A stretch of DNA of 64,000 nt, from positions 2,418,001 through 2,482,000 of the forward strand of contig OZ037766.1 in the NCBI GenBank assembly GCA_964035545.1, read 5' to 3'. The DNA comes from Bugula neritina. Its lineage: Eukaryota > Animalia > Bryozoa. Each line of letters opens with the position of its first letter. Position 1 is the first letter of the stretch. A program made the translations under genes and the position numbers. Shown piece by piece: positions 12,541 through 43,065 of this stretch. A model generated the notes under the pieces. It saw only the letters and a list, made by a program, of their open reading frames with translations, was not told the DNA's origin and made no database searches.

Positions 12541-15500
12541 CTAAAAATGTCATGACTCACACTGAATATACTATTACGCACAAGCACACAAACACATTTT
12601 AAATGTCTACACATATATACATATTATTATTTTCATATACTTATTTACATACATATATATATATTTATATAAATATAATGTTTGATAAAATAAATAAAAT
12701 GTTCACATAACAATATATGGCGCATGGAACTTAGGTTGCATAATGTTTTATCCCTCAAAGTGCAGTAGTACTATAATAGTATATTATGATGCATCAGCTC
12801 ATTAAAATTAGCACAAAGCAATAGTTTAATTAGAACTGGTTCTTTTGTTTCCACACATTTCACTTAAATGATGAAGGGTAGACAACTCCGAGCCAATAGT
12901 TCAGAAATCAAAAAGTATTTACTTGTGCCCAGTTGACAGAATAACCATAAGTAGATGTTCATTCCTGCTTTTGAATAATAAGGTTATTGCCCTTTAGTCC
13001 AAACTGGAATTAATTTGTACATAGTGTTTCTCCAGCCGAAATGTGTTTTGGTAATTTACTTGGGATAACAAATATAGATAGCTAAATTTACTAGCATAAG
13101 TTAGCTATATAACATACTAACTATAGCGTAGGTTCATTGGATAAACAGGGCAAAGGGACTTTAGCCAGCTTTATTAAATTGTTATAATCATTTTAAAGCT
13201 GAATTTGAAATTAAAGTACATTTCTATAGCTGTTCAAAAATTACTCTTGTGTGGAAAAAGTGAAAAAGCTCAGCCAATCAACACTCAACAACATAAATTC
13301 AAGTTTGCTCATAGCTTAACTACATAATTATTTTTAGTTTAGCCAATACTCAAACATACTACTAAAAGCATACTGCTGTTGTCAAAAATCAGATAGCTCT
13401 GAGCCTCTGATGTATAGCTCAATATAAGAAGCGATGAACACTAATAACTTTTAGTAGTATATGGTGAAAATAACCATGCAACTGGAATATACATATAATT
13501 AGTATGTGCATGTCATTAGTTACTTCATCACCATTTGCTATACTTATCACATGTACAATATGCTATATATATTATACCTAATGCAATTTTGGGACTTGTA
13601 AATGGTATTTCCTGTGTCAAAATTTCTTAGTAATCCTAAATTTGCACAACTACAATAGTTTTGCTCTTAAACCTAGCATTTTATAGCCTAAGGCTTCTTT
13701 AAAATGTATAACAGCTGTTTATAATTTTTTTTTATTTTGTCTTTACCTTCTCTACGTATAGCTATAGCTATAAATACCTATAAGCCACAAAAGGATCTAT
13801 AGGTGGTTATACCCGCAGTAAAGATATTGGAAAATTATTGCAGCTGTCTATATAAATAATTCTTCAGATTCTTTGAGAAAATATCTCTTTGGAGTGTCCA
13901 TTAATTGCAGATGGCAGTTAGAAAAATATTTTAGGTTTATTTGTAGCATTCCATATATAATTAAAACATGATGAAATAATAGACTAATTTTATTCCTAGA
14001 ATCTAAGTTGCGGACACAAAGTGCTAAGTGATTCCCTGTTTTGTGACTAATCAACAACTTATTATATACATTTATCAAATAACACCTGTCATCAGTTGTC
14101 ACTTTGGAAATTAATGGGAAGTTCTAGCTGAGGAAATCATAATAGAAAAGTGACATATTGAATCATTCTCATCAACAACTGGAAGTATTATGTAAGCAAA
14201 TAAAACATGTAATTGGAAATCTATAAGCTTTCACTCCAGTTTTGTAATCTAGTTATTTGTTTGCTGTTATACCGCCATATACCTTTGCTTGTCACAGAAA
14301 AAAAGCAGTAACTGATTGCTATGTAAAATTGAAAGCAATAGAATTAATTCAAAGATAAAAAAGCTGTTTCTGTATTTGACACGCAAGCGTTACATTTACC
14401 ATGCATAAACAAAACTAAAGTTTTGTAAAATCAATTTTTCTTAACGAATTTATTTTTTTCAGTTTACTAAACATTTTTAAATTGAGCAATACAGCTAAAT
14501 AAAATATAAAACTACGTTCTATTTTAATAATTCGCCAGAATATATACAAGTAATACTTTATTCTACAATAATGCTGTAAAGCATATTATTAGAATGTAGC
14601 TATAATCAGTTTTAGAGTGTCATGCTTTCTCATATTATAGTGTTGAGAATATTGTATCATTCCTTGTGCTTAGCAATCAAAATCTTTAATATAAAAGTTT
14701 CGGCGAAAAATTGGAATATTTTAAAAGCAAATTTTGCCATATAAAAGAGTGCCATTATTGAAATGCATCAATGATAATTATAGTTATAAAAACTATCTAT
14801 GAATGATTCACATATCTTATCAATTTTTGTCTTTTTATGAAATTGGAAGTTTTAAATAGGAAATGTGACATAAAACTGACATTATATTATTTCATCTGCT
14901 AAGCGGCAAATATTTTTATAGAGAATTGAAGCCTTGCCTCTAGGAAATAGGCAATTTTATTTTAATAGAATGTATTTCTTCTGTCAAAACAAAACAATCA
15001 GGCATATTATTTGTTTATATAACTGGAAATGTATAGTAAAATGGAGTTATTAAAGCCATTATACAATGACTTATCAAAAACAAAAAATATGTTTTATTGA
15101 TCTCTACACAACCCTACTGTCAACTAGAATGCAAAATTCTTAGGCTAGTCACCAAACACTATAAATGGCTTCAACAACTTTAATGCATTCATAGTTTTGT
15201 TTAATACTTTGTAAATTAAAATTCCTTAAAAATATTTGATTTACATATTTATGCAAGATTGGTATATTTATGGCAAATGTACAAACAATATATGTATAAG
15301 CTCTTAGTTAAAATGAGCTGTTGTCATTACACACCTTTTGGAATATATTAAATAATCAAAATATTGATTAATGTTGTAATACCATATAATTAGAAATAAA
15401 ATAGAGGAAATCAATATGAAGGTCATCTGAGATATAATTTAGCTGATTAATGTATTTTCCTCATTTTATAAACTGTAACAATTAATGAGAAATTAATTAT

Positions 15501-15544
15501 AATTAAAACAGCTAAGTCATGATTATAAGGAATATGTCAAAAAG

Positions 15545-15551
15545 TATAAAA
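15545..15551 (+). promoter_or_regulatory. TATA box of Tyr-rich peptide copy 1
   Basis: TATAAAA ~30 nt upstream of a short exon ending AAAA|GTAAG (~15627); conserved in copies 2 (21498-21504, minus strand) and 3 (23288-23294). Confidence 0.7.
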
Positions 15552-16168
15552 GAGAGAAAATCTGTTAGGATAAATCATTCACTTGTTGAACATCAGTTGT
15601 ACAGTGTGATCTACCTGAACTCAAAAGTAAGATTTTTTAGTTATTTTTTATTTTAAAATATTTAAAATATTTACTATATGAGTGTATTTTAGTATAGCCT
15701 TTCTTATAATAAAAATATACTTTAATGTATTTTTTTATTTTATTGAACAACGAGGTTGAAAAATTACACATAATTTAAGAGAGCTAATTCTACTTTTGCA
15801 ATTTTACCAGTGTTTGTTACTAAAACTGCACTTTTTAATGTTTTGAAATTTTCAAATGTTATAAAACATCAACTAATCTTAAAAGAAAATTAATTGTTTA
15901 AAATTTTCAAACATGTTTCATTTGCTCTCATTAAACAAAAACTATAAAACTCTTATAAAAAAGCAACAAAAAGGTTTTTTATTTTTTGTCGACTCAAATT
16001 CTTATTCTAATTTTGTTGAAAGATTTCTTAAAATTTAAGATGAAATGCTTGGTATAGCTTTTAGACTATGTTTTGAGACAAACAATAAGTTGTTGGTGGT
16101 GATTTAACTTTCAAGTGTTTGAAACTTGATAATTGACTAATTTATTTTTGCAGACTTTAAACTCAAAC

Positions 16169-16372
16169 ATGAAGGTCATTGCAATCCTATTGGCTGTCTG
16201 CCTAGCACTTACCTCTGCTACTTACTACAACAACTATCTTTATGGAGGATACGGACTATCTAACTACAAGTACTACAACCGAGGTCTATACAACAATTAC
16301 AGAGGTTTCAACTTTGGAAAGGGCTATAACCTATACCCATCCAAACTCTCCTCTTACTATGAAAGATACTAG
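16169..16372 (+). CDS. Secreted Tyr/Gly/Asn-rich cationic peptide, copy 1 (67 aa)
   Basis: MKVIAILLAVCLALTSA signal followed by TYYNNYLYGGYGLSNYKYYNRGLYNNYRGFNFGKGYNLYPSKLSSYYERY. Acceptor TTGCAG at 16153 lies just before the ATG; 3'UTR intron donor at 16386. Confidence 0.9.
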   Translation: MKVIAILLAVCLALTSATYYNNYLYGGYGLSNYKYYNRGLYNNYRGFNFGKGYNLYPSKLSSYYERY

Positions 16373-17893
16373 ATGGTAACACCTGGTAAGTGCAACTAGC
16401 TAACTTCTATAAATTGTGGAGGGTACAGTAGCTGTCGAGGAGCTTCAATTGCAGATTTTTATATAGTTGATCTTGTATAGCTCCTATATATTAGTAATTA
16501 AACAATAAAATTATAATATGACTAAAAAATTTTATTGATTTTTTCACACGATTTCTGCAAATATTGATTTTATATTGCATTGTTAATGTCCTAAATATAT
16601 AGAATATATATTTTATTAAACTTATAGATACATTACTATCTTGCAAAAATAACTCTACACTTGAGACTCTTAATTTATATAACATGTATATGTTTATGTT
16701 GTAGAAAACTAAAAAGATGAATTCTCGACCGACTCAACTGCCTGACCTGTCCCACTAAAAACATTTGTTTGTTAAACTTTTTTTATGTCTCAGTATCTTT
16801 TTGTCTTTATTTGTTATATTTATAACTGTTGAAAATAAAATTTGTTTTGTTCACAAATAAACATAAGATCAAATCACATGTTTTTATTGTCTTTACAGTC
16901 ACCAGACGGGATATTGCATCATAATGTAAAGTTTAGCATGTAGTTGCAATCTCTTCAATTTATAAATAAATTTATTAAGAGTTGTGATATCTTGCTCATT
17001 CAGCTGAATGAGACAACTCCCACAAACAATGAATTACATCATAAATTATGATGCGTGATGAAAAGTGCACACTTCTCAAATTTCACTATAATAGTTGCTA
17101 TATGTTACAAATGAAACAAGCAAAATTTATTTAATGTTATAGCTATTATTATTGATGTTATTGAATCATACATAGGCTATATTTGAAAAGGAAGTATTAT
17201 TTCTATTGTACATATAAAGAGTGGCTGTATAATAGTAATACTGTAATATTAACAATAACAAGCAAATAGTAACTTAATTTATAAGTGTCTCATTTTTTAT
17301 CTAAAAACCATGTTACTTGTGACTATATAAGTTATTATTTTAACTGTGCTTGAAGAAAGCATATCACGTTTTTCTACGAGAAAAAGAAGTTAGATTTCTT
17401 TTATAACTAATAGGAGAAAATGAGTAAACAGCAGTATTTCATAGTTAAAAGCAATAGTCTTTATATTTAAAAATTTGCTTAGTCTTAGCAACCATCTGGG
17501 CTCTTCTGAGAAGCTAGATTTACAACTAATCTATATAAATTATGTTTTATTTTATTTTTGCGAAATATTTGAAAACCAGAATGTTTTAAATGCAAACATT
17601 TCAATATAAAGTAATTTTATTTGTAGCAGTTTGGGTCTGTTAAAAACCCAAAAGCATATGTTATAAAAGTTTAAAACTTATATGTATGGGCTCATGAGTA
17701 TAGTTACAGTATTTATTCTTAGCAAATAACGCAGAATGTAATACCTCGATGTACTAAATCCAAAAAAATGATATATGGTTAAAATACTAATTGCTACCAT
17801 ATAGTTACCAGCGTCATTTTTATAAGGACAGTCAATATTTCAGAGACCCATGCATTAATTGATCCGAAGGTTCATTGGTCCAAAGATACTTGA

Positions 17894-18176
<283 letters not shown>

Positions 18177-19039
18177 AAGTCATTTTAATCCAGAATACAT
18201 ATTTACATATATAACTCTAATTAACGATATCTTTGATTATTTAATGATAAACCAGCACACAAAACTATCGGGCATTGCTGGAGTTTAAGTTGTTTACTAC
18301 TGAATAACCAGGTCATATTGGTTTGTAGTTTGGGAGAATATTTTTCTCTATTAAGCTAAATAAGAAAACTAAAACTGGTGTCTGTATTTCAGTAAAAGCA
18401 ATGATGTTTAATCACATTACTGAAACAAGTTGTTATTCAAATTACATATAATGTTATGACAATATAATATATTGTCATAATATTATATAAGTTATAGAAA
18501 TATAATATATAGCTTTTAAAATAGCTGAGGTTATTCCGCAGCTTTTCATAATTAAACTCTATATATACTATAAATAAGAGTTTCTAATGAAAGGTTATTT
18601 TACCAACATATAATTGCATGCATAAATGCTGGGCTTGCTACAATTTAGATTTTATTATACAAGGAGAAAAACGCCAAATTAATATTTTTGAGCATTGATA
18701 AAAAATAAAAGGATCGCAAATAAAAATAAAGCACTAGCAAAACCTTTGTGCTACTTTTTTGACCAAATATAATACAATGAGCATATAGGCCTACAAGATA
18801 AATGACAACAGTATTACATCATTGCTTTTACTGAAATACAGACACCGGTTTTAGTTTTCTTATTTAGCCTAATAGAGAAAAATATTCTCCCAAACTACAA
18901 ACCAATATGACCTGGTTATCCAGTAGTAAACAACTTAAACTCTAGCAATGCACTGTGTACTGGTTTATCATTAAATAATTAAAGATGTCGCTAATTAGAG
19001 TTGTATATGTAAATATGTATTTTGGATTAAAATGACTTG

Positions 19040-19040
<1 letters not shown>

Positions 19041-19080
<40 letters not shown>

Positions 19081-19103
19081 TGTGCGTGTGTGCGTGTGTG
19101 TGT
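19041..19103. repeat. Interrupted (TG)n, mirror copy of the (CA)n in the other arm
   Basis: Same flanks as 17896-18175 in reverse complement. Confidence 0.9.
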
Positions 19104-20674
19104 ATGGACGCAAGTATCTTTGGACCAATGGACCGTCGGATCAATTAATGGGCCTCTGAAATATTGACTGCCCCTATAAAAATGACGATGTTAACTATAT
19201 GGTAGCAATTACTATTTCAACCATATCACATTTATTTTGATTCAGTACATCGAGGTGTTACATTCTGTGTTATTTGTTGAGAATAAATACTGCAACTATA
19301 TACTCATGAGCCCATACGTATAAGTTTTAAACTGTTAAAACATATGATTTTGGGTTTTTAACAGACCAAAACTGCTACAAATAAAATTACTTCATAAATT
19401 GAAATGCTTGCATGCATTTAAAACATTCTGGTTTTCAAATATTTTGTAAAAAATATAATAAAGCAGAATTTCTATAGATAGGTTGTAAATATTATGGTCT
19501 ACCAGAAGATCTGGCCAACCAGAAAAGCTCAAATGGTTGCTAAGACTAAGCAAATTTTCAAATAAAGACTATTGCTTTCAACTATAAATAGGCTAATTAC
19601 TCAAGTACTCCTATTATAAGTTATAAAAGAAACCTAACTTCTTTTTCTCTTAGAAAAACTTGATATGCTTTCTTCAAGCACAGTTAAAATAATAACTTAT
19701 ATAGTCACAAGTAACATGGTTTTTAGATAAAAAATGAGACACTTATAAATTAAGTTACTATATTTTGCTTTTTATTGTTAATATTACAGTATTACTATTA
19801 TGCAGCCACTCTTTATAGGTACAATAGAAATAATACTTCCTTTTCAAATATAGCCTATGTATGATTCAATAACATCAATAATAATAACTATAACATTAAA
19901 TAAATTTTGCTTGCTTCACTTGTGACATATATAGTAACTATTATAGTGAAATTTTAGAAGTGTGCACTTTTCATCACGCATCATAATTTATGATGTAATT
20001 CATTGTTTTGGAGTGAACGTGGGAGTTGTCTCATTCAGCTGAATGAGCAAGATATCACAACTCTTAATAAATTTATTTATAAATTGAAGAGATTGCAACT
20101 ACATGCTAAACTTTACATTATGATGCAATATCCCGTCTGGTGACTGTAAAGACAATAAAAACATGTGATTTGATCTTATGTTTATTTGTGAACAAAGCAA
20201 ATTTTATTTTCAACAGTTATAAATATAACAAATAAAGACAAAAAAATACTGAGACATACAAAAAGTTTAACAAACAAATGTTTTTAGTGGGGCAGGTCAG
20301 GCAGTTGAGTTGGTCCAGAATTCATCTTTTTAGTTTTCTACAACATAAACATACGTATGTTATATAAATTAAGAGTCTCAAGGGTAGAGTTGTTCTTGCA
20401 ATATATAGTAATGTATCTATAAGTTTAATAAAATATATTCTATATATTTAAGACATTAACAACGCAATATAATTTTGATATTTGCAATAATCGTGTGAAA
20501 AAATATCAATAAATTTTTTTAGTCATATTATAATTTTATTATTTACTTACTAATATAGGAGCTATACAAGATCAAATATATAAAATCTGCAATTGAAGCC
20601 CTTCGAGAGCTCCTGTACCTTCCACAATTTATTGAAGTTAGCTAGTTGCACTTACCATGCAGGTGTGTTACCAT

Positions 20675-20893
20675 TTAGTATCTTCCATAGTAAGAGGAGA
20701 ATTTGGATGGGTATAAGTTATAGCCCTTGCCAAAGTTGTATCCTCTGTAATTGTTGTATAGACCTCGGTTGTATATACCTCGGTTGTAGTACTTGTAGTT
20801 AGATAGTCCGTATCCTCCATAGAGATAGTTGTTGTAGTAAGTAGCAGAGGTAAGTGCTAGGCAGACAGCCAATAGGATTGCAATGACCTTCAT
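20675..20893 (-). CDS. Secreted Tyr/Gly/Asn-rich cationic peptide, copy 2 (72 aa)
   Basis: Same signal peptide; carries two NRG[I/L]Y units; same exon architecture in mirror image. Confidence 0.9.
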   Translation of the reverse strand: MKVIAILLAVCLALTSATYYNNYLYGGYGLSNYKYYNRGIYNRGLYNNYRGYNFGKGYNLYPSKFSSYYGRY

Positions 20894-21417
20894 GTTTATG
20901 TTTAAAGTCTGCAAAAAAATTAGTCATTTATAAAGTTTCAAGCATTTGAAAGTTAAATCACAACCCACAACTTATTGTTTGTCTAAAAGCTACACCAAGC
21001 AATTTATTTTAATTTTTAAAAAATATTTTATTAAAATTGGAATAATAATTTGAGTCGACGCAAGCAATAAAAAACTTTTTCGTTGCTTTTCTATAAGAGT
21101 TTTATAGCTTTTGTTTAATGAAAGCAAATAAAACAAGTTTGAAAATGTTAAACAATTAATTTTCTTTTAAGATTAGTTGATGTTTTATAACATTTGAAAA
21201 TTTCAAAACATTAAAAAGTGCAGTTTTAGTAACAAGCACTGGTAAAATTGCAAAAGTGGAATTAGCCCTCTTAAATTATGTGTAATTTTTCAACCTCTTT
21301 GTTCAATAAAATAAAAAAATACATTAAAGTATATTTTTATTATAAGAAAGGCTATACTAAAATACACTCATATAGTAAATATTTTAAATATTTTAAAATA
21401 AAAAATAACTAAAAAAT

Positions 21418-23374
21418 CTTACTTTTAAGTTCAGGTAGATCAGACTGTACAACTGATGTTCAACAAGTGAATGATTTATTCTAACAGGTTTTCTCTCTTT
21501 TATACTTTTGAGTTATTCCCTGCCATGAATTGGCTGTTTGATTATACAGTTATTTTCTTATTATTTGTTATAGTTTTTTAAGTAAGGAAAACACATCAAT
21601 TAGCCATAAATTATATCTCAGATGACCATCATGTATAAAATTCACTTCCTAAATCCTATTTCACATAAATAAGTTACAAAACTATTCATTATTTTTCTTT
21701 TTCCTCAAATTGCGATCAAATTGCATGACTGCCTCAATATTCTATATTATTCATTTCAACACTCTTCATTACTTTATGGAAATAGAAATATTCTATTTGC
21801 ATAATAATTGTTTCTATCTCATGGCTGGTTCTTGCCACATAAGTTATTAAATTATATTAAAATACACACAAAAAGCACAATTTTAAAAATAGTAACAACT
21901 GTTAAATAGCTAATACGCATATTACGCTATATATGCCATAAGTTAATGCGCAGCTATAGGAATAAACCCAGGAAATTATCATAGAATATGAATGTTCTCC
22001 AACAACACTGTGTGATAAATTCAAATTCAACTGAGAACTAAACTTTGCTGACCAATTACCCAGCAGTGAGCCAAAAGTCAATATAGATGTTTTATTAGCG
22101 TCAAAGGAAAAAGGAAAATGTTTCCATGACTATAAAAGGGTATAATATAATCCTTAATATTGATACTTGAATTATCAGAGATGTTGTCGTAAGGTAAATA
22201 TATCAAAACACAGAATCAAAACATCGAACAGTGCCCAGCGCATGGTTGCTTTTATAGGAAATATTTTATAGCTTTTGGTTCAATTATATTGCTTTGTAAA
22301 TTAAAGCAGAACTACATGGAAGAAACCTAAAGATTCAATTTAGTTTTATATTTAAAATTAGCATATATTTAAAATAGAAATGTGAAATAAATATCATATT
22401 ATGTATGGTTTTACCAAAAACTGTTTATCATTACACACGTCATTCATATATATATAATGACCATCTTATAACTGTGAAAAGTGAAAAAACTAAACATCTA
22501 TTTAAAATGCATTTGAGGGAATAAAGCCTTATAACTATACTAAGGGTTGTTGCATGCTTCAAAAAGTTTGATGTTTTGATTCTGTGTTTTGATATATTTA
22601 CCTTACAACAATATCTCTGATAATTCAAGTATCAATATTAAAGATTATATTATACTCTTTTATAGTCATGGAAACATTTTCCTTTTTCATTTGACGCTAA
22701 TAAAACATCTATATTGACTTTTGGCTCACTGCGGAGTAATTGGTCAGCAAAGTTTAGTTCTCAGTTGAATTTAAATTTATCACACAGTGTTGTTGGAGAA
22801 CATTCATATTCTATGATAATTTCCCCGGGTTTATTCCTATAGCTGCGCATTAATTTATGACATATAGTGTAATATGCGTATTAGCTATTTAACAGTTGTT
22901 ACTATTTTTAAAATTGTGCTTTTTGTGTGTATTTTAATATAATTTAGTAACTTATTTGGCAAGAACCAGCCAGATAGGAACAATTATTATGCAAATAGAA
23001 TCTTTCTATTTTCATAAAGTAATAAAGAGTGTTGAAATGAATAATTTAGAAGATTGAGGCAGTCATGCAATTTGATCGCAATTTGAGGAAAAAGAAAAAT
23101 AATGAATGTTTTTGTAACTTATTTATGTGAAATAAGATTGAGGAAGTGAATATTATACATGATGGTCATCTAAGATATAATTTATAGCTAATTGATGTAT
23201 TTTCCTTACTTAAAAAACTGTACCAAATAATAAGAAAATAACTGTATAATAAAACAGCCAAGTCATGGCAGGGAATAACTCAAAAAGTATAAAAGAGAGA
23301 AAATATGTTTGGATAAATCATTCACTTGTTGAACATCAGTTGTACAGTCTGATCTACCTGAACTCAAAAGTAAG
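21418..23374. repeat. Large inverted repeat 2: arms ~21418-22229 and ~22566-23374, ~340-bp spacer; promoters and first exons of copies 2 and 3 head-to-head
   Basis: GTAAGGTAAATATATCAAAACACAGAATCAAAACATC (~22189-22225) is the reverse complement of GATGTTTTGATTCTGTGTTTTGATATATTTACCTTAC (~22570-22606); the match continues out to the exon-1 donors. Confidence 0.92.
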
Positions 23375-23967: not shown

Positions 23968-24186
23968 ATGAAGGTCATTGCAATCCTATTGGCTGTCTGC
24001 CTAGCACTTACCTCTGCTACTTACTACAACAACTATCTCTATGGAGGATACGGACTATCTAACTACAAGTACTACAACCGAGGTCTATACAACCGAGGTC
24101 TATACAACAATTACAGAGGATTCAACTTTGGCAAGGGCTATAATTTATACCCATCCAAACTCTCATCTTACTATGGAAGATACTAA
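23968..24186 (+). CDS. Secreted Tyr/Gly/Asn-rich cationic peptide, copy 3 (72 aa)
   Basis: Signal peptide plus a 55-aa mature part with 16 Tyr, 9 Gly, 9 Asn, 4 Arg, 3 Lys and no acidic residue. TATA 23288, exon-1 donor ~23370, acceptor 23952. Confidence 0.9.
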   Translation: MKVIAILLAVCLALTSATYYNNYLYGGYGLSNYKYYNRGLYNRGLYNNYRGFNFGKGYNLYPSKLSSYYGRY

Positions 24187-29702: not shown

Positions 29703-29783
29703 GTTTACCCAGTGGCTCCTGTAGTAAAATGGTAGCGTCTGCTTGCAAGCTGTCAGTAGCTGGTCCGAATCCCAGTGGGAGCA
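29703..29783 (+). mobile_element. tRNA-like SINE head, family B
   Basis: GCTCCTG...TGGGAGC acceptor-like stem, A box TAGTAAAATGG, B box GGTCCGAATCC. The anticodon arm is poor. Homologous to 40144-40215 including the upstream GTTTACCC.GTGG; a deleted copy lies at ~29511-29550. Confidence 0.55.
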
Positions 29784-31331
29784 AATAAGTTGCGTATACA
29801 ATGCTCACACCTGGCTTGCTAAAACCATTTAGTTGAGTTCAATAACTACACGAGTCAAAGCTCTAAAGTGTATTTGAAAAACAGCAGCTCCACCTACAAG
29901 TTTTTATCTTAACCAGTGTTCTTTTGTTACTATATCATATAAGAGTTACTGTAAAATATCTAAAGTAAAATTTTCATTCTTTTGAAAGAGTGTTAGTGCA
30001 TGTCACTACGTCTTAATACCTTAATTGTTGTGGTAATACATGTTTTGCTCGGTTTTATTCTATTTATAGTAGATGCATTTCAATTAAATTAGCAATAAAG
30101 CTTGGCAGAATCTTCCCCAGGTTTACTGTACTTATCATTAGCATATTATTAACTAATTGGTAAATGATTTTAAAAGAATAATACTAAATGGTGTCACGCA
30201 ATGCAAATATTAGGTTATAGGATAATGTATAATTCATGACAGAATAATGATACTAACATTGTCTCTCTTAAACCCATGCCAATTCAAATAAAATTTGATT
30301 TTTGAAAGTTAGCGGTCAATTTAAAGCATTTAAATACATAATAAGCTTTCAAAGCTATTTGTTTAACATATTAATAATAGAAGTTGAATATAAATTGTTT
30401 TGAACTCATGCTGCAAGTTAAACTTGTATATAAAGTTTCTTGCTAGTTTAAGGAGCTTTATCATAGCCCCTTAATGAAGAGTATCATAGGAGCATTAGTT
30501 CTCAGGCTAGAATAAAAAATAATAATAAGACATCTTTAATTTATTTGTTAAATATCATTAATCACTATTTTTTACAATAATTCATTTTTTACAAAGTGAA
30601 TTTTTTTTCAATTAAACTTTTTTGATAGTTTTGATAAATTAGCGATTAGTTGGAATGTGTCAGCTATCTAATAATCCAGCTGACATCAATATTGGTACAA
30701 GAAACGCATTACTATATTAAATAGTATAGAACGCATTTTTATAATTACAGTTATCAAAGCTGAAATATGACAAATTGATAACATGTATTTGCAAAGCATT
30801 TAATCAGAATAACTTCCTTGTGTTCTATAAATAAAAAATTATTAAAATATTTGGGGTTGAAGACATCATTTCTCTGAGAGCTACAATATGCACCCAAATG
30901 ATATAAAAGGCCAGCTGCAGCTCAGAGAAATTCAAACATCTCACAATATCCACTGCTGTACTCCAGTAATTCAGAAAACTCTAAATTTGTAAGTATCCAG
31001 TATTTAGCTGCAATTTACATTACTTGAGTTTAATAATTGTTGTTGTATTGTGCTCATAGCTTATAGATTTGAATTTTTAGAAAACTAATTGCTGGTTTTG
31101 CATTATATGTACCTTGAATCAAATTTCCATTTGAAAGTAAATTATTGAGTTGTTTATCAATCTATTAGTTTTAATTATTATTAAGATAGCTTTAATATTT
31201 CACCAATAAGTTCATAAGAACTTCTAAATTAAAAATGATCTTTTAAAAACTGCAGTTTGAACAAATAAAAACAAAAATTCAAACCAGTAAGTTATAAATT
31301 GGATATGAAACATCATTGTAGACTTTCCACC

Positions 31332-31622
31332 ATGAAGCTGTACATCCTAGCTCTATTCCTCTGCATTGCCGTAGCCAGCATCTCGGCTGGCTACATAAAA
31401 CCAGTTCACCGATATGGCAGCAGCTCTGGAGGAAGTCACTCTGGCAGCAGTGATTCTGGCAGCAGTGGTTCCAGCGACAGTGGAAATAGTGCATCAGACA
31501 GCTCGGACAGCTCAAATGGTTCGGACAGCGACAGCAACAGCGACAGCAAAGGAGACTCTTCCAGCTCAGATGACTCATCCTCAGGAGGAAGACTCTACAA
31601 ACCTTACAGCAAATACTACTAA
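31332..31622 (+). CDS. Secreted Ser/Asp/Gly-rich protein with basic Tyr-containing ends (96 aa)
   Basis: MKLYILALFLCIAVASISA signal; mature GYIKPVHRY-(S/D/G core; 32 Ser and 10 Asp in 77 aa)-RLYKPYSKYY. TATAAAA 30902, exon-1 donor ~30989, acceptor 31321, Kozak-like CCACCATG, 3'UTR intron 31652-32067. Confidence 0.88.
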   Translation: MKLYILALFLCIAVASISAGYIKPVHRYGSSSGGSHSGSSDSGSSGSSDSGNSASDSSDSSNGSDSDSNSDSKGDSSSSDDSSSGGRLYKPYSKYY

Positions 31623-33109: not shown

Positions 33110-33310
33110 TTATAGTCACCATCCCTGTGAGATCCCCTGATGGAAAGAGTTTCTGTTAAATCAGGCTAAGGACTTATTCATATGTGGCACAGGAAAAATT
33201 ATGACTGAATACTCTTCCCAACATCACCAATGACTTTTAAAAAGGATTCATGAACTCTTGGATAGGGATTTACTAAGTCATCGCTCTAACCCCCTAGGCC
33301 ACGACTACAC
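33110..33310 (-). mobile_element. tRNA-derived SINE family A
   Basis: Colinear with 53405-53596 (TATAGTCACCATCC...CCCTGAT...GGCTAAGGACTT...AATTATGA...AACATCACCAATG...GCTCTAAC). Confidence 0.7.
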
Positions 33311-35117
33311 CATCCCATTCTGTATTAAAATATTCTTGTCAACTAATGTGAAAGAGTTTAATGGGCTAATAATGGTTACTTTTCTTTCTAGAGAAAACAC
33401 CATTTACCAACTCAAAACATTGGGCAGATAACTACCAATGCGAAATAGCATATTATTCATTTAAATACACATATACTAATCTGATTTTGAATCAGTGGTG
33501 TTAAATATGTAATCTAGGAATTTAGCTAGCTTTCTATGTGACACAGTGTATAGACTAAGCAACCTACCCTGTCATGGTTATAAGACAAAGATAAACTTCC
33601 AGCCAAAATGAAATTTCTGAACTATACTTTGAAGATGCCTGAGCTGTGCCATCAGCATAGTTTGATTCACTTTCTAGCCACTATCAGCTATAGCTACATA
33701 TTCTCACCTATCTCTGCTTTGTCCTGTTTGGGTAGTGAGGCTATAGCTATATATGTCAACTTTAGTTATTAAACAAAAATAGAAAACATTTATATGGCGC
33801 AGACTGCAGACATTTCATTATATTAGGAGACAAGCCTAATTGCATTAAATTTTATTAATTATAATTATATATAAACATATTATAACAGCCAAAATTCTTC
33901 TCAGTGCCATAATTTGCAATAGCATGTATAGAGATAAAAATATAATATGGTTGTTAGTAGCTTTTAAATTTCACATAGCATATACTATGGCCACTCAATA
34001 AAAATTAGCACTAACACTACTATGGTCTTATAGCATTCATAGCACCCTATAATGCATGTCCCATGGGGCTACAGCTGATGGAGGTTGAGAACTAATTAGA
34101 AAAATGATTGCATAAGAGTATTTAGCAAATGAGGAATTGTGAAACTGAAACTGTGTTGATACAGTTGTTGGTCACTTGCAGTCATGCTTTGGTTCTCCTT
34201 GCACCAATGTGCAGTGAAGATTGCAGCAGACAAAGATATTTTGTGTCAGCAGAAAATTAATAAGAATTTAAACACATGCACCCAAATTAGTACAGACAGT
34301 TTAAAACAATTGTTGATTGTCATTAAGTAGTCTGCAATGATAGACCTGAAAATTAATTAATTGCAAAAGATTAATGAGATTGCATTATGTTCCATAAAGA
34401 GTTTTGTTTAGGCATGTGGTGCTTTAGTTTTGGTATCTCCTTGATGGCCTTTCAGACAATGTGATGGGTATTCAATTACATTTTAAAAAAAAATATGTGT
34501 CATATTTGCTCTTGTGTAGAGCTAGTGAACTTGTCAAGTGAAAATTGGCATCACATCTCATCTGCAGCTGAGTGTGTTCACAGATTTTTCTAATAAATGT
34601 TTTTATCCTTATTATCAGAGATAAAGTTTGAAATATTTGTAGATTATTGTTGTTCAAATAATTATATTCTGTCTAGCGCATTCACAATGCTATTAGACTT
34701 GGTTCAAATAAGGTAACTGAATTCCAGTGACCAGTCAATATTCCAAAGGCCCATTAGTCTGAAAGCTCATTGGTTAGGTTATTAAAATAAAACTGGTATT
34801 ATTTTTATTGTGTAAGCCTATATATAAAGTGTACCTAAAAGGTTTCAGGTTGAAGCCCCAAAGCCATGTAAAGGACTTTCCATATGTGCCTGTGTGCATA
34901 TGTACTAAGCAAGTATGTATGGATCAATAAATTTATGGAACATGAAATTTATAATATCAAATATAAATTCAATTCAGCACATATGAGCACAAAATTTAAT
35001 GTAACATGAAACTGTTTAAGCATAAAATCCTTAAAAATATGTAGATAGTAGCTAAAGTATATATAGGAATGTCTTAACACTGCATGAGTGAATGGTCTCA
35101 GATACTCTTTAAAATAT

Positions 35118-35709
35118 GGTGTCCGGTAAATATGGCCAGGTAAATATGGCACAGGTAAATATGGCACAGGTAAATATGGCACAAGTAAAAATGGCACAGG
35201 TATAAATAATGGCAAAAAATGGCAAAGTAGGTAAAAATGGCATATTCTCAATATTAGGGTTTGGAGATAGGGGTTTGAGTTTGGGGTTGGGGTTTAAGTG
35301 TTAGGGGTTTGGGTTTCGGCTGAGAGGTTTAGGATTTGGGGGTTGGGAAAATTCAACATCTTTAGTGTGCCATGTTTACCTACTTTACCATTTGTGTCAC
35401 TATTACCTGTGTCACTATTACCTGTGGCATTATTACCTGTGCCATTATTACCTGTGTCATTTTTACCTGTGCCATCTTTACCTGTGCCATTATTACTTGT
35501 GCCATTATTACCTGTGTCACTATTACCTGTGCCATTATTATACCTGTGCCATTATTACCTGTGCCATTATTACCTGTGCCATTATTACCTGTGCCATTAT
35601 TACCTGTGCCATTATTACCTGTGCCATCTTTACCTGCGCCATTATTACCTGTGTCATTTTTACCTGTGCCATCTTTACCTGTGCCATCTTTAACAATGCC
35701 ATTTTACCA
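35118..35709. mobile_element. Foldback/MITE-like element: inverted arrays of a 15-bp unit flanking a G-rich telomere-like core
   Basis: Left arm (GGTAAATATGGCACA)n, right arm (TGTGCCATTATTACC)n in reverse complement, core TTAGGGTTTGG...TTGGGG at ~35253-35347. Explains the CHYYL/VPLLP/CAIIT ORFs. Confidence 0.75.
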
Positions 35710-36176
35710 AAAATTTTAAAATATTTATAAGTTGAATCAGTTGACAAAATTACTTGAGAATGCTTTTGCTTGATATATCATATTATATTATATATTTTTA
35801 GTTCAAGTTTATCATATTATTGTTATTTTTAAATTATTTCATCTTGATGACAGATTACCCAGTTATGAAGCTATGCCTATAGTTTTCTTATTATTGTCTT
35901 GACTTCCGTATCAGTGTTGTAGTTACAATAGAAGGGCAGATAACTCCCTATGCTTTAAAATACAAGAGCAGATAATATATACACACCTGGAATCTTTATA
36001 CATTCTTCACTCTCTACACTAATATAATAACTAACTATAGAGCTCTACTTTGGACTTATAGCTGTAATGAAGACTAATTTTAATCCTGCACATGTAATTT
36101 TAAAAAGTGTGCTTATTTGGGTAATGTACATTGCAGCAATTACTTTTTATATCTCTGTTCTTTTGAATTATTAGGA

Positions 36177-36179
<3 letters not shown>

Positions 36180-36272
<93 letters not shown>

Positions 36273-36357
36273 TATGTGTGTGTGCGTGTGCGTGTGCCTG
36301 TGCGTGTGCGTGTTTGTGTGCGTGTGCGTGTGTGTGTGTGTGCGCATGCGCGTGTGT
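36180..36357. repeat. Compound (TA)n + (TG/CG)n microsatellite
   Basis: Read directly. Confidence 0.95.
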
Positions 36358-37818
36358 ACAAGATACAGATTGATACAGTAGTTTGTGTGAGTACTATCAG
36401 CTCAAAATTGACCAAAAAATATTATTTGCTATTCCAGATAAAAAAGATGAATTTCCACGGCAGATTGTAATTTGCTATTAAAGAACACAACACATATTAA
36501 AATTTCTGTGGCTTATTGTTCATAAGTTTTTGGCTTCAATATTTCTTTGTCTTTAATTTTATTTTCAACCATTCTATATATTTTATATCTTTTTAATAAA
36601 AACTCTCAAACTTTAAAATCTATACTGTGAAACACAAAAATTTGTAGCAAAAGAATGCCACGTTTCTTATATTATACTCTCTTTTGTTATTTTTAAAAAC
36701 TATATATAGTATAACAATTAATTGATTTAGGACGTGATAATTCAAAACATGTGGCAAATTTTAAAGTGGAAAAGAAAAAATTATAATATCATAAAAAGTG
36801 TTGGATGACAGAAAGTTTATGAATACATCTTTCAGTGATTAGATTATGTGAACAGTTGTTATTAGATTTGATAGGATGTACATACAAATATTTTCTATTG
36901 ACAAAGTTAGCGCAGCTTTGATTCAGAGTAGTAGAGAAATTTTTGCAATGTCAGCTATTTTTAGAAAATATTGTTTCCTTGTTTCAGCATGACAACAACT
37001 AAAGTAGTAAAAACATAATGTTTTTGTATTGATTTTAAATAATATTACTTTGACAAAAGTTTTTGTCGGTAGCTGCACTGTCATCTTTTGCTTAGCAAAA
37101 ATCATGTATAACAATTATTTAGATTTTCTTTGGAATTTGGACTTTATTTGTCTCCTAAGATATATATATATATAAATAGCAAAATCAAATTTGATTATTC
37201 ATAGAAATATGTTGACATTACACCGTAATGACCTTTATACTGTAAAATATATATATTTAAAAAGTTTAGTTGAAATACATAAACTGCTGTCATAATAACT
37301 CACTGTCAAACAGTTTCCTCTAACTCTTAAAATAGCATTTTCCTCATACATAACCTAGAATGTTGTCAATAACTATCATACATATTGGCAACTTTTTGCT
37401 GAAAATTTTATATAAAAGAGAAGTATATTTGGTGTCTAATCATTGCTATCTACTAGTCTGCTAGAATTACAAGATCAACTTTTTTTGAAAAGCAAACAAA
37501 ACACCGTAAGTATAATCTGAAACTTATTAAAAGTCAAGTTTCAAAACTTGAGATAAGTTTTTTAGAAAAGTAAAGTATTTCATTCACTAGAAGTTGCAGT
37601 TACTAGTTCACACTGCATTGTGAAATTTATTTTTTATTTTTTTTATTTTACATGTTCTCACACCAAAATCTTGTTAGAAATTTTTGTTGCTACCTAAAAT
37701 AGTTGTGTATATAAAACGAAATTTTTACTAGCAGTTTTTAGCTTTATCTTTATTTTTTAATTTTTTATTTTGGATTTTTGCCTCAAAGTTGTTTGTGGTT
37801 CTTACAGACTACCAAATC

Positions 37819-37923
37819 ATGAAGCTGTTCAACGCCCTTGCTGCTCTCCTTCTCATTGTTGTGCTGAGCACCGTCTCTGCAAGCAGATACTCTGATTCTA
37901 ACTCCAACAGCCGAGAGTATTAA
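37819..37923 (+). CDS. Secreted micro-peptide (34 aa): MKLFNALAALLLIVVLSTVSA-SRYSDSNSNSREY
   Basis: Below the ORF-track cutoff. TATAAAAGAG 37411, exon-1 donor GTAAGT 37506, acceptor TTACAG 37807, clear signal peptide, 3'UTR donor 37968, acceptor ~38463, AATAAA ~38568. Same layout as the neighbouring genes. Confidence 0.75.
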   Translation: MKLFNALAALLLIVVLSTVSASRYSDSNSNSREY

Positions 37924-37967
37924 CTTTCGCCTTACCGCTCTACCAGTGCCCACTACAGAAACCTACA

Positions 37968-38110
37968 GTAAGTTACAGTATATAAATAGTATATAATATA
38001 GTAAGTTACAGTATACAACTAGTATATAATATAGTGGGTTACAGTATATAAATAGTATATAATATAGTAAGTTACAGTATATAAATAGTATAGACTGTGA
38101 TAAGTTACGG
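37968..38110 (+). repeat. 33-bp minisatellite (GTAAGTTACAGTATATAAATAGTATATAATATA), ~4 copies, starting at the splice donor
   Basis: Units start at 37968, 38001, 38034 and 38067. Confidence 0.88.
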
Positions 38111-40143
38111 CAAGTATAGAACTATATTATAAAATAAATTGTAGTTACACAACATGTAACCATGCAACTACACTGTATTATACTTTGAACTGCACTATAT
38201 ATTTTGTCAAATGGCAAAGTTGAGAACTGAAATAGTTAGATGTGCTGTTTGAATATACTTTAAAACTGTAGTGAATTTACAAATTAAATATTACTTTGTT
38301 TATTTAGCGAAAACAGTAATAAAACTTTTTAGCACTGTTATGGATGTTGAAAATTCATGCATATCCAAGTTACAGCTAAACATGTAAGTCTGAACAACTT
38401 CTTCAAGTATCAGTTGCATTAGTTGCATTGAACAAAGCAAGTAAACTTTTCATTTTATTTTAGATAAAGAGAAGATGTCAACATCAACATCAAAGATCCA
38501 AAAGTTTCTGAGATTTCTAATTAACTGCATTTTATCAATTTCTTAATTTGTGTTTGTTTAATGTTGATAATAAACTCATAATTTTCAAACTGATTATATA
38601 CTATTTGTTGGTTTCCAAATAATTCTCATGGAGAATCAAGCAAGCATTTTGTGATAATTTTGTATAATTTAGAGCACAAAAAAACAATTCTTTCTTTTAA
38701 AAAATTATTAAATAATTCAGCTTTATGTTCCATAACATTTTGATTGGACAGATTTTAAAATAAGCACCTTCCATGGCCTTGAATCACAATGCTACATGTC
38801 CAAAGGGAAATAGTTCTAATAATAGAAATATAAAGCAAAAATTATTCTCTAAAGAGTAAATCAACATTGCTGAATTCAACTAATGTAGAGTTAAAACATA
38901 TGAAGCAAAAGAATAATATTGCTGCGCATTACTCCACCCATTAGCATAAGATTTCATTACCATTTAATGAAAATTAGGAAACATAAATACGCATGTTTAG
39001 TCAATATCATGGTACAGTAAAAATAATAATTTTTCTATGTATATGTTATATATGTTAGTACAGTTTTTTATTCATAATTATTTTTCATAACATGCATTTA
39101 AATAAATAAAAGTTTGCAAGAAAGTAGTTGAATAAAAAATCAGAAAAATTTCTATTTAATGAAGTAATGGTGATATCAAACTGGAAGAAAAAATTTTCTT
39201 TATCAATAAAAACATTTGTAGCAAATCTTGTCATAAATTTAATATAATACAAAATTAAAAATACAGATAAATGCTAAACATCCAACTGATTTAAAGCGTA
39301 TGTCCAAAATGCATCAAATAGAGCTAAGCAATTGGATCTAATTGATTTCTAGTTGATAAAAATAAGACATACAATGTATAAAATAAAAGCATATCATGGA
39401 CAAAGCCATTTGACATTTGGAATGCACTTTATATACTCATATAGGAGTAGTTAAAAGCTGAACAAATATTGTCTTAGTTAATCTTAGTACTCATTTCCAC
39501 ATTTTCAATATTATTTACATTATTTTTAATTAGCTAAAGCAACAACATGTAATAATTTAGTTATCAAATAAAGGATGTGTACATATTATGTATGTTTATG
39601 AATATCATGACATGCTGAAGCCACTGCTTTAATAATAAAATTCAATTAATGTATGCATTCAAAGTTACTTAATCATTTAAATAAACCCTAGCAGCCTTTG
39701 GTATAATAGTGCGTGTGGTTTAAGCAGTTAATAATAGTTATATAATCAACCACCCGCAACTCTTACAGACATAAATGTACAATAATAAATTAATTTTTTA
39801 ATAAAACAATATAACTTTTTGTATCACTAATAGATGGTAGGATTGGCTTGCAGTTATGGCTATGTGGTGACGTAATGTTGATTATGTAATTTTATGATTG
39901 ATGATGCAAGCTAATGCTGGCAGGCAGGTCATAGGCTAAATAAATGTCTGGTCATGGTTTCATAGGTCAAAATGAAATGCACCCTTTAAGCCTAATGGGC
40001 AGTGTAGGAGCAGTGAAAGGGCAGTGATATATGTCAATAACCTATGATTGTTCTTCGACTCACTAAGACTTATACAATTGGTTTAAAATATTCTCCATTT
40101 TTTAGTTTTTGTGTAAATTCAAACTTAGGCAATATAGCGTTGA

Positions 40144-40215
40144 GTTTACCCTGTGGCCCCCTGTGGTGTAATGGTAGCATCTGCTTGCAAGGCGGTGGTC
40201 CAGGATTCAAATCCC
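40144..40215 (+). mobile_element. tRNA-like SINE head, family B
   Basis: A box TGGTGTAATGG, B box GGATTCAAATCC; shares ATGGTAGC.TCTGCTTGCAAG with 29703-29783; the 3' acceptor strand is missing. Confidence 0.55.
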
Positions 40216-41846
40216 ATTTATCTAATGCTGAATTGTCTCAGGAACTACAAAATTGCTTCAAATATCAGTTATTGATAAAAATGATTTTCATAATAAATCT
40301 CTGAAGTTATAATAATGATTATTTTTATTATATCAGTGCTTGAAAAGGTTTTTTGAATAAGCATTAGTGATTTTTGTAAATGTTTTTTATCAGAAACCAT
40401 CAGTCTGAATAAATTACTTCCAATTATTGAGCAAATCACACACAGCTTCAATCAGAATGCATTGAATATTTCACTGAAGCAGCTTTGACTGTAAGCATTG
40501 AAAATGTTCCTTCATGGAGACTATAAACTGTGCTACTCTCAAATAATACATAGCAAGAGCAAAGTTTTTATGTCAGCTATACCAAAGTTGTCTTCTCCTA
40601 ATAGAAGTTTAATACTTGATTGAAATTTCTATGATGTCAATATTTAGACCAGTTCTATACTACTCATGTTTTGTAAGGCGGATTTGCTCTTGGATTTAAT
40701 CTTCTGACACTCTATCAACAAATTCAAAAATAATTCTAGATAATAATAGCAAACAAGTTAAGAAGTTAAAACTCACTGCGAATAAAAGTCGGTATTTCAA
40801 TTGACATATTTTTATGCTTAATTAATTTATGACTATAGGGATATACTTGGCCACACTAATGAAGCTAGTATGTAATATCTTTTTGAGTATGTTTCAATAT
40901 TTTTGCACATATACATTATGTGGATAGCATTTATGTGCAAACGAAATTAGGCAGTGTATTTATGAGGCTGAATCAATTAAATGAGCTGCCACAGTAATTG
41001 CATTTTGTATACCACTCAGATATTTTTACACCAACTTCTGAAGCTCATGTTGAATGGAGTAAAGGATATACGTGATCCTTTTAACATTTATATGAAATTA
41101 TTAATAGCAAGTTATTATGCTTTTACCATTGAGTAATAGATTAAAACACTAATTTTTCAGTTTATTAGGGAAATATGGCAATATATTTTATAAGTTTAAA
41201 AATACAATTTTAGCATTAAAATTAAGCATTTTACGCTTTACTAAAATTAAAATGAACATTCAATTTCATGAAAATTAAAGCATTTCTTTTACATATTATA
41301 TATATATAGCACAAAATTGCAAAATCTACAAATGTGACTATATTACGCATCTATAGTATTGAAGAAATTTTTCTTAGCCCAAAACTAATAAAACTATTGT
41401 CATTTTGAACTGATTAGAAAAAGATTCACTGTTCTTCAATTATTATGTAATATTCTATAATTACAGGATGATTTCATCTCTCAATCAAGAAATTTTTCTT
41501 TTTTGGTTAAAAGGATTTTTGTGGGTGAGCGAACTGACTCAAGATTTTATAATAATCTAGCAACACTGCGAGAAAGCACACACATCCGGTTAAAACTATT
41601 TTTCTACGTTTTGTCACAGTTTTTGGTGATTTAATTACAGATTATTAGGTAATTAGATTATTAATGGGTTCAGCACATTATGTAACAAGTTGTGAATTGC
41701 CCGATTATATAACACCTTTCCATATACATTGACTCTAAATTTCTCATTGGCTGTTTAGCATAATGTCATTATAGTTACACCTATATAAGCTGGTGCAGGC
41801 TCAGTGTTTGCAAATCTAACTGCAAGTACTAGTTGAATTACCAAAG

Positions 41847-43065
41847 ATGCTACAGGTAAAACTTTAAGATATTTCTAGCTGATACCATGTATATATTTAT
41901 TAGGGAGTTTTCATTTTCTCAATTCTCTTCTATAGAGTTCTAATTTATTTTTCTATTCTATGACTGCATGAATAATTCTTTTTTAAACTTGGAGATACAG
42001 ACATTTTTAATTTATAGTATATTACATAAAATTTAAAAGAATTGTATTATAACTTATGTCCCCCCACCCAGTTTTTTTGTTTCAAACTAATTGGAAAGGG
42101 CAGATAATGCAAATAAAATTTATTTTTCTCTCATTTGACTTCTGATAAAATATTTAAGATTGATTTGAGAGTTTTCTAAATGAAATTCTGGAAAATTCTT
42201 GTCAATTTTTGCATAACTGAGGTATCTGCATTATTTTAATAACACAGACATTTAATTTTTATAATTGCATTTGAATACAAGTTAAATATGACAATTATTG
42301 CGCTGAATATTAAATTATTATAGCTGCTCATAACTGCATGAAAATTTATTGCAGGGAACCACAAAGATGATTGGTCTGGCTAGCTTGAGCTTACATCTGC
42401 TAATTTGGTCCTTAACTGAAGCGTATGAGGATGTGGTTTATGAAGACGTGGTTTCGTATGAGAGTGTGAACCCTTTACATGATACTTCTTATGTTCACAC
42501 ATCATCTGGTAATGGGGTGGGCGGTTTGAGCCACCACAAAGGCAAAGGTTTTGGCAAGAAGAAGATAGGAAACTTAGGTGGTGGGTTCCATGATATTCCA
42601 CATGTTGGGTCACATGGTATATCATATGGTGGCCACACACCGTACGGTGATTCCCTACACGGAATTCCCCATGGTTTACCACACGGAATTCCCCATGGTC
42701 TACCACACGGAATTCCCCACGGTTTACCACATAGCCTACCACACGGTTTACCACATGGGCTACCCCACGGCTTACCATTTGGAGGTGGAAAAGTTTTGAA
42801 TGGTCTTGGTTTTGGAAAAGGTGGTGTTGGCGGGTTTGGGGTGCCACATGGCGTGGGTCACGTGGGCCTGCACGGAATAGGAGACATCTTTGGTCTGGGT
42901 AAGCAAGTCATTCCTGGAACTGGACAAATTCACGGTTTGGTTCACTCACAAAACTTGGGACATGGAAAGCGCCGCTCTAAAGGAAAGAGATATCATGGAG
43001 AGAGTGATGGTTATGGCTACAACCATGGAGGACCAGACCAGATCTATGGTTTAGATGGTTATTAA
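41847..43065 (+). CDS. Secreted His/Gly-rich protein with (HG[I/L]P)x10, ~239 aa; exons 41847-41855 and 42355-43065
   Basis: TATATAA 41782; exon 1 ATGCTACAG|GTAAA splices in frame to TTGCAG|GGAACC (an alternative start is the internal Met at 42367). Hydrophobic signal ending LTEA, YEDVV x2, ten HG[I/L]P-type repeats (one HSLP), Gly-rich tail with KRRSKGKR. Confidence 0.85.

Follow-up and report, generated by a model that had tools for sequence, protein, structure and literature searches.

Tyrosine-rich secreted peptides of the bryozoan Bugula neritina: a multi-copy gene family with a possible role in cuticle or cement

A stretch of chromosome 2 of the bryozoan Bugula neritina that is 64,000 nucleotides long (positions 2,418,001–2,482,000; contig OZ037766.1 of assembly GCA_964035545.1; hereafter the window) includes six protein genes with signal peptides and TATA boxes, located between 15.5 and 43.1 kb from its start. 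Three of the genes, Y1–Y3, encode cationic peptides rich in tyrosine, and the other three encode an acidic Ser/Asp/Gly protein (SD), a micro-peptide, and a His/Gly/Pro repeat protein (HG). Genome and database searches indicate that Y1–Y3 form an outpost of a large family of genes that is restricted to the Bugula lineage. The Tyr-rich peptides may serve as bulk building blocks, amenable to cross-linking, of a secreted cuticle or cement, in which the SD protein and the micro-peptide are possible partners; the relation of HG to such a material is uncertain. This is the best explanation of the data; however, it is tentative, with an estimated probability of 0.45. Candidate materials are the cement or the tanned chitin-protein cuticle of zooid walls and rhizoids.

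The family of Tyr-rich peptides

With Y3 as the query, the whole genome yielded 23 matches, and the 200 kb of sequence read around them contain at least 34 genes with a single coding exon, the signal peptides of which are identical almost letter for letter. This near-invariant signal peptide of the MKVIAILLAVCLAL type is the hallmark of the family. The genes are distributed over three loci on chromosome 2 (C2), with the main tandem array at C2:3,228,620–3,345,229, and their mature parts belong to five types (residues in one-letter code):

Type A, Y/N/G/L: 8 copies, of which 3 are in the window, 3 at 3.23 Mb, and 2 at 15.78 Mb
Type B, Y/R/N/S: 5 copies
Type C, G/Y/N/H with an FGFGK end: 9 copies
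Type D, Y/R/N with a YYYRG end: 3 copies
Type E, longer Y/N/R/G: at least 5 copies

The mature peptides of the family have masses of 6.2–9.2 kDa and isoelectric points (pI) of 9.3–10.7, and contain 17–32% Tyr, 15–21% Asn, 8–21% Gly, and up to 23% Arg. In comparisons between the types, the DNA encoding the signal peptide is the only part that remains alignable. Within type A, the promoter together with exon 1 and the coding sequence (CDS) are conserved, and the intron is not. The lengths of the peptides vary through the gain or loss of short repeats, with one to four NRG[LI]Y units per peptide. The draft assembly from 2020 (GCA_010799875.2) includes a type-A gene encoding 82 residues with four NRGLY units (VXIV02003252.1, 4662–4910). 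The locus is arranged differently from that in the present assembly, which indicates that the number of repeats or the arrangement of copies varies between individuals or haplotypes. Another locus of the 2020 draft corresponds to the type-A pair at 15.78 Mb, and the SD/HG region of the window was not recovered in that assembly.

The copies within the types bear the signature of purifying selection. The proportion of nonsynonymous differences (pN) is smaller than that of synonymous differences (pS) in 27 of the 28 pairs of type-A genes, and the pN/pS of the mature peptides of types B–E is 0.00–0.40, with pS values of 0.12–0.19. The proteins are thus near-identical while silent sites drift, as would be expected if many copies were required to supply large amounts of a single product. 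The purifying selection on the copies fits the multiplication of genes for a bulk product better than diversification in an arms race.

Among 1.84 billion representative proteins, a profile built from 26 members of the family retrieved ten sequences, nine of them from B. neritina and one encoded on a metagenome contig. A word-based protein search with a Tyr-rich peptide identified only "hypothetical proteins" of B. neritina and unnamed sequences from the Joint Genome Institute. The metagenome homolog is located at positions 500–1510 of the 2.2-kb contig k141_570407 (European Nucleotide Archive accession ERZ27264225). The contig is not B. neritina DNA; it shares with the family the TATA context, 5′ exon, intron, and spacing between the acceptor and the ATG. 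The homolog has a similar signal peptide and a more Gly-rich mature part of the GGY type. Therefore, the family is present in at least one other species. The searchable literature appears to contain no description of it.

An exon that opens with a signal peptide is located some 20 kb ahead of the main array, at C2:3207088–3207318 (+); the motif that follows resembles, by eye, the beginning of a "defence protein" with a reeler domain.

Organization of the six genes in the window

The window has a GC content of approximately 30% and contains many microsatellites. The six genes are flanked upstream by a B-box/NHL-like gene at 9–12 kb and downstream by copies of NAT10. They are organized as follows:

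15545..16385 (+): Y1 gene, type A; 67-residue precursor, CDS 16169–16372; TATA box at 15545, exon-1 donor at 15627, end of acceptor at 16153, GTAAGT donor at 16386, past the stop codon
20656..21504 (−): Y2 gene, type A; 72-residue precursor, CDS 20675–20893; TATA box ~611 nt upstream of the CDS, donor ~19 nt past the stop codon
23288..24206 (+): Y3 gene, type A; 72-residue precursor, CDS 23968–24186; TATA box at 23288, donor ~20 nt past the stop codon
30902..31651 (+): SD gene, acidic Ser/Asp/Gly protein with Tyr/Lys ends; 96-residue precursor, CDS 31332–31622; TATA box at 30902, GTGAGT donor ~29 nt past the stop codon
37411..37967 (+): micro-peptide gene; 34-residue precursor, CDS 37819–37923; TATA box at 37411, putative donor ~44 nt past the stop codon, bordering a 33-nt tandem repeat
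41782..43101 (+): HG gene, His/Gly/Pro repeat protein; open reading frame (ORF) 42367–43065; TATATAAG at 41782, likely ATG at 41847, donor at 41856, exon 2 from 42355, AATAAA at ~43096

The initial annotation of this DNA had described six consecutive genes, each with a TATA box and a signal peptide, with no other recognizable gene between them. This description is borne out, apart from small corrections. All six genes are present at the places given for them, and no other gene was identified at 15–43.5 kb by Pfam, in a search that included ten intergenic ORFs, or by Rfam. The ORF of HG has 238 codons in DNA with a GC content of 30%, which is far beyond what chance would produce. The micro-peptide gene is the weakest of the six: a 34-codon ORF easily arises by chance, and the 3′ donor falls in the 33-nt tandem repeat. 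It is the layout that speaks for this gene.

In each of the six genes, a TATA[AT]AA[AG] box is positioned about 400–680 nt upstream of the ATG. It is followed after about 25–30 nt by an initiator (Inr)-like element, and then by a short first exon, a donor, and an intron of 350–600 nt, the acceptor of which is located only 10–16 nt before the ATG. In the Y1–Y3, SD, and micro-peptide genes there is a GT[AG]AGT donor 13–44 nt past the stop codon. Therefore, the coding exon of these five genes is probably the middle one of three. When both strands of 264 kb of sequence were scanned for the composite three-exon layout, the matches were Y1–Y3, the SD and micro-peptide genes, 16 genes of the main array, and one off-target locus; 20 shuffles of the window gave zero matches. 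The layout of HG is unlike that of the others: it has an in-frame ATG at the end of exon 1 (41847) and an AATAAA signal 31 nt past the stop codon, and there is no donor after the stop codon. Translation of HG probably starts at the ATG in exon 1, which adds seven residues according to a splice junction read by eye.

Three properties characterize the family: the signal peptide, the layout, in which one coding exon stands between an untranslated 5′ exon and a donor shortly past the stop codon, and a Tyr-rich basic mature part. Y1–Y3 have all three, the SD and micro-peptide genes share the layout, and HG has none of them. The common three-exon layout suggests, as the single indication of its kind, that the SD and micro-peptide genes share their origin with the Y family. 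Codon usage for Tyr (TAC:TAT) is 12:4 in Y3, 5:1 in SD, and 2:9 in HG.

The cluster had been taken to begin at 15416, and the sequence at 15416–15430 (+) is ATGAAGGTCATCTGA, a four-codon echo of the start-codon region of the family that is followed by a stop codon. It is located about 130 nt upstream of the TATA box of Y1 and possibly represents what is left of an older family copy. Tandem repeats are present in the second half of the cluster. Two arrays of 15-nt units, at 35125–35202 (5 copies) and 35393–35687 (19.5 copies), are positioned between the SD and micro-peptide genes; the consensus unit of one is nearly the reverse complement of that of the other, so that the arrays are mutually inverted. 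They are followed by TA and TGTGCG microsatellites at 36.2–36.4 kb. The putative 3′ donor of the micro-peptide gene coincides exactly with the start of the 33-nt tandem repeat (3.8 copies, 37967–38108), and each unit of the repeat contains GTAAGT...ACAG, that is, donor-like and acceptor-like sequences.

Composition and predicted disorder of the mature proteins

The mature Y1–Y3 peptides are 50–55 residues long, with masses of 6–7 kDa and pI of 9.5–9.7. They contain 29–31% Tyr, 16% Asn, 14–16% Gly, and 7% Arg, and the Leu content of type A is 7–12%. The initial annotation had named them cationic Tyr/Gly/Asn/Arg peptides. Their cationic character and richness in Tyr, Asn, and Gly are borne out; however, because Arg constitutes only 7% of the residues, the term Arg-rich is better suited to the other types of the family.

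The mature SD protein has 77 residues, a pI of 4.65, and a composition of 42% Ser, 16% Gly, and 13% Asp. Its runs of Ser do not exceed four residues, Tyr is confined to the Tyr/Lys-rich ends, which are like the C-terminus of the Y peptides, and the net charge of the unmodified protein is −4. Ser is encoded by all six of its codons (18 AGY and 14 TCN), and the GC content of the CDS is 0.51, compared with a background of 0.30. SD is protein-coding: its richness in Ser is selected at the level of the protein and is not the product of a DNA repeat. The earlier description of a Ser/Asp polyanion with Tyr/Lys ends is correct in composition, but the protein lacks blocks like those of the sandcastle-worm cement protein Pc3.

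The mature part of the micro-peptide is only about 13 residues long, rich in Ser, Tyr, Arg, and Asn, and near-neutral. Mature HG has 213 residues, with 26% Gly, 12% His, and Tyr-bearing termini. Its core is formed by a repeat with a 24-nt unit that encodes two HG[IL]P tetrapeptides without Tyr, in agreement with the previously proposed His/Gly repeat protein, the start of which is to be placed probably further upstream. In AlphaFold2 predictions of Y3, calculated with the family alignment, and of HG, calculated from the protein alone, only the signal helix is confident, and the mature parts have predicted local distance difference test (pLDDT) scores below 50. The models are consistent with disorder of mature Y3 and HG.

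The SD, micro-peptide, and HG genes are each single-copy in the genome. There are no homologs of SD or the micro-peptide among 5.8 billion clustered proteins, and the matches of HG in the same set are limited to its repeats, which cover 15–19% of the protein. Neither the Y peptides nor SD or HG belong to a Pfam family. A search for exact-protein records of Y3, HG, and SD (with two alternative starts) returned none, with records of the genome itself possibly excluded from the search. The neighbors proposed by a protein language model are low-complexity proteins of arthropod cuticles and vitelline membranes, pro-resilin and prisilkin-like proteins, and one nematode peptide family. The scores of 0.77–0.82 are in a range often reached by shuffled proteins, and the neighbors are leads only; this applies also to the cluster nearest to HG, "Prisilkin-39-like", with a score of 0.82.

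One co-secreted material or a group of neighbors

The initial annotation had regarded the six genes as encoding charge-complementary parts of one co-secreted material. This seems doubtful. The proximity of the genes argues in its favor: three further genes for secreted low-complexity proteins (SD, micro-peptide, and HG) are located within 12 kb, and none other was found in about 230 kb of comparison sequence, to which the control for background density is limited. The alternative that the six genes are neighbors without a shared function is a serious contender, even if it falls short of an even chance. The type-A trio would derive from a segmental duplication out of the main array, at a distance of 0.8 Mb, and SD, the micro-peptide, and HG would be unrelated lineage-specific secreted proteins in a gene-poor stretch; in this case, each protein could have any function. 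In agreement with this alternative, the type-A copies at C2:3.23 Mb and C2:15.78 Mb have no SD-, micro-peptide-, or HG-like neighbor, and SD, the micro-peptide, and HG are single-copy. The four kinds of genes share no detectable similarity in sequence, and their promoters are alike only in the core TATA and Inr elements. HG differs in its layout, and most of its Tyr codons are TAT, as opposed to TAC in Y and SD. The density of secreted low-complexity genes speaks against chance neighborhood, as do the three-exon layout of the SD and micro-peptide genes, which is found elsewhere at one other place in the 264 kb that were scanned, and the resemblance of the Tyr/Lys ends of SD to the C-terminus of the Y peptides.

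The Tyr-rich peptides as building blocks and their functional alternatives

If the Tyr-rich peptides are bulk building blocks of a cuticle or cement, they would be exported through the secretory pathway and would condense through cation–π and π–π contacts of Tyr and Arg and by pairing with polyanions, which could be an acidic polysaccharide or the chitin matrix, and possibly SD if it is phosphorylated. The material could then be cured by oxidation of Tyr to the quinone of 3,4-dihydroxyphenylalanine (DOPA) or to di-tyrosine. The genome carries a tyrosinase domain, identified as a single exon match, and Fam20C-type kinases, both of which are encoded on other chromosomes. All of the material steps, the modifications, and the participation of SD, the micro-peptide, and HG are inferred; the genes themselves, their secretion signals, composition and predicted disorder, the multiple copies, and the purifying selection on them are shown.

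Several observations weigh against a common material built from these proteins. Common descent of the SD, micro-peptide, HG, and Y genes finds no backing in sequence comparisons: in profile comparisons the signal peptides alone aligned, with a probability of 27–28%, and DNA comparisons detected no colinear similarity. The two other loci of the family lack neighbors resembling SD, the micro-peptide, or HG. The imbalance between these three single-copy genes and at least 34 genes for cationic peptides weakens the inference of a co-secreted material, and so do the separate layout and the Tyr codon preference of HG. The tyrosinase and Fam20C genes are not linked to the cluster, and the tyrosinase is represented by one exon match. 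No homology to known structural or adhesive families was found, and literature searches on Bugula found no papers on these proteins. Furthermore, clustered Gly/Tyr-rich secreted peptides are also a known form of antimicrobial peptides, and a gene for a cationic Cys-containing peptide is located nearby.

A role in host defense is the main functional rival. The peptides, perhaps including the His/Gly protein, would be antimicrobial peptides that kill microbes or keep them away, on the surface of the colony or in the coelom, modeled on the NLP/caenacin clusters of nematodes and the Gly/His-rich antifungal peptides of insects. Such a role appears rather unlikely. It would account for small, secreted, strongly cationic peptides with a conserved signal peptide, variable mature types, and tandem arrays, and the Gly/Tyr-rich antimicrobial peptides of Caenorhabditis elegans are likewise encoded in small clusters (PMC2453101). 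The C-termini of type C (Gly-Lys) and type D (Arg-Gly) are possible amidation signals, a cationic secreted peptide with four Cys is encoded 9 kb upstream, and a nematode-specific peptide family is among the language-model neighbors, at 0.78. However, pN/pS values of 0–0.4 within the types are unlike the positive selection reported for the nlp-29 cluster of C. elegans (PMC2453101), and the Tyr-rich peptides have neither an amphipathic nor a Cys-stabilized design. Gly, at only 8–21%, is not dominant in them, and the acidic SD and the near-neutral micro-peptide are unsuited to an antimicrobial role.

A matrix for skeletal calcification is improbable. According to this explanation, SD would nucleate or inhibit calcite in the zooid wall, which is lightly calcified, and the Tyr-rich and His/Gly proteins would form an insoluble framework comparable to mollusc shematrin and prisilkin. 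The Asp/Ser-rich core of SD shows the kind of DSS-like pattern that typifies acidic proteins of biominerals, the nearest language-model cluster of HG is prisilkin-like, and Fam20C kinases are present in the genome. By contrast, the family is hugely amplified although B. neritina is only weakly calcified, SD contains only 13% Asp and has a small negative charge when unmodified, searches revealed no homology to shell-matrix families, and the literature search found no bryozoan skeletal proteome. It is least probable that the genes encode precursors of neuropeptides or hormones. Small precursors with a signal peptide, the possible C-terminal amidation signals of some types, and the 13-residue product that the micro-peptide precursor would yield are compatible with this; however, dibasic cleavage sites do not flank units of bioactive size, the composition is of extremely low complexity, and a dosage of at least 34 genes is atypical of neuropeptides.

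A seventh small secreted-peptide gene

The gene for the Cys-containing peptide is a seventh small secreted-peptide gene in the window, about 9 kb upstream of the cluster:

5944..6800 (+): seventh gene; TATA-like element at ~5944, exon with 5′ untranslated region, signal-peptide exon 6280–6331, last exon from 6678, stop codon 6797–6799

Its signal peptide opens with the same five residues as that of the Tyr-rich family, and the gene is single-copy in the genome. The peptide, as spliced by eye, is cationic and has a mature part of about 40 residues with four Cys in the arrangement C-x3-C ... C-x-C; it has the appearance of an antimicrobial peptide or toxin.

Significance for fouling and bioadhesion

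B. neritina is a major fouling organism of ships and aquaculture and a model for the settlement of bryozoans. Literature searches found no papers describing its glue, cuticle, or skeleton proteins at the level of sequence. A far-reaching version of the explanation presented here would be an independently evolved system like that of the mussel adhesive protein mfp-3, cured by DOPA or di-tyrosine, in which more than 30 cationic peptides combine with phosphorylated SD, and maybe with HG, in the cuticle, rhizoid cement, or larval glue. Such a system appears unlikely. If it existed, its components would give the Bryozoa their first adhesive or cuticle proteins of known sequence, and it would constitute a third independent origin of the strategy of forming coacervates from cations and phosphoserine. 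A dosage-amplified family similar to mfp-3 would provide concrete molecular targets for antifouling work, and new short sequences for the design of wet adhesives or coacervates. With such a family, the convergent evolution of Tyr/Arg "sticker" peptides would be clearly exemplified in a further, third lineage of lophotrochozoans. If the peptides were antimicrobial instead, they would represent a new lineage-specific family of antimicrobial peptides in a holobiont known for the chemistry of its symbionts.

Comparison with known adhesive, cuticle, and peptide systems

The resemblance of the proteins from B. neritina to known systems is one of composition and not of homology, as the initial annotation had cautioned: by sequence, none of them is a member of the mfp-3, Pc3, squid-beak histidine-rich beak protein (HBP), or arthropod cuticle families. 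The low-complexity cuticle proteins of arthropods, which include Gly/Tyr-rich, His-rich, and pro-resilin-like proteins, are similar in composition and in the proposed role in a matrix cross-linked through Tyr- and His-quinones, and HG has its repeat in common with a pro-resilin-like protein. However, Y, SD, and HG lack the Rebers-Riddiford domain Chitin_bind_4 (PF00379) and any other Pfam domain. The NLP/CNC genes of C. elegans likewise are clustered, arose by tandem duplication, and encode small, secreted, Tyr-rich proteins of low complexity. By contrast, Gly is a minor component of the Y family and Asn and Arg are major ones, and selection is purifying rather than positive. The language-model score of the nematode peptide family is below the useful range.

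The HBPs of the squid beak have tandem Gly/His/Tyr pentapeptides at the C-terminus, of which GHGLY drives phase separation (PMC9999432). HG is similar to DgHBP and to Nvjp-1 of Nereis in that it is secreted, predicted to be disordered, built from Gly/His-rich repeats, and has Tyr-bearing termini. However, its repeats are Pro-containing HG[IL]P tetrapeptides without Tyr, not pentapeptides of the GHGLY type, and its His content is 12%. HG thus falls outside the definition of an HBP, and the parallel to the squid beak that had been drawn for it is one of composition. The cement of the sandcastle worm Phragmatopoma combines Lys/His/Gly/Tyr polycations with Pc3, which contains about 70% phosphoserine in blocks of 6–12 residues that are separated by single Tyr or joined to a basic C-terminal block (PMC9999432). 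The idea of pairing cationic Tyr/Gly/His proteins (Pc1, Pc2, Pc4, and Pc5) with a Ser-rich acidic protein, which could undergo phosphorylation and drive complex coacervation, is shared, and the basic Tyr/Lys ends of SD loosely recall the basic C-terminal block of Pc-3A. However, the Ser of SD is interspersed with Asp and Gly, and its content of 42%, its runs of at most four, and the restriction of Tyr to the ends set SD apart from the block structure of Pc3, to which no homology was found. SD therefore does not come under the definition of Pc3. In addition, one SD gene in B. neritina stands against at least 34 genes for cationic peptides.

A parallel in bulk properties is provided by mfp-3, which has a mass of 5–7.5 kDa and a pI of 8–10, is highly polymorphic and non-repetitive, and contains 5–20 mol% DOPA (PMC9999432). 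The Y family belongs to another phylum and has no detectable homology to mfp-3 in its sequence or signal peptide, and the type-A peptides of the window differ from mfp-3 in their high content of Leu and low content of Arg. Nevertheless, the Tyr-rich peptides of B. neritina match mfp-3 in every bulk property that was computed, in line with the compositional resemblance noted in the initial annotation: they are small (6–9 kDa), basic, non-repetitive, and very rich in Tyr together with Gly, Asn, and Arg, and they are secreted, predicted to be disordered, and encoded by highly multiplied genes of five types.

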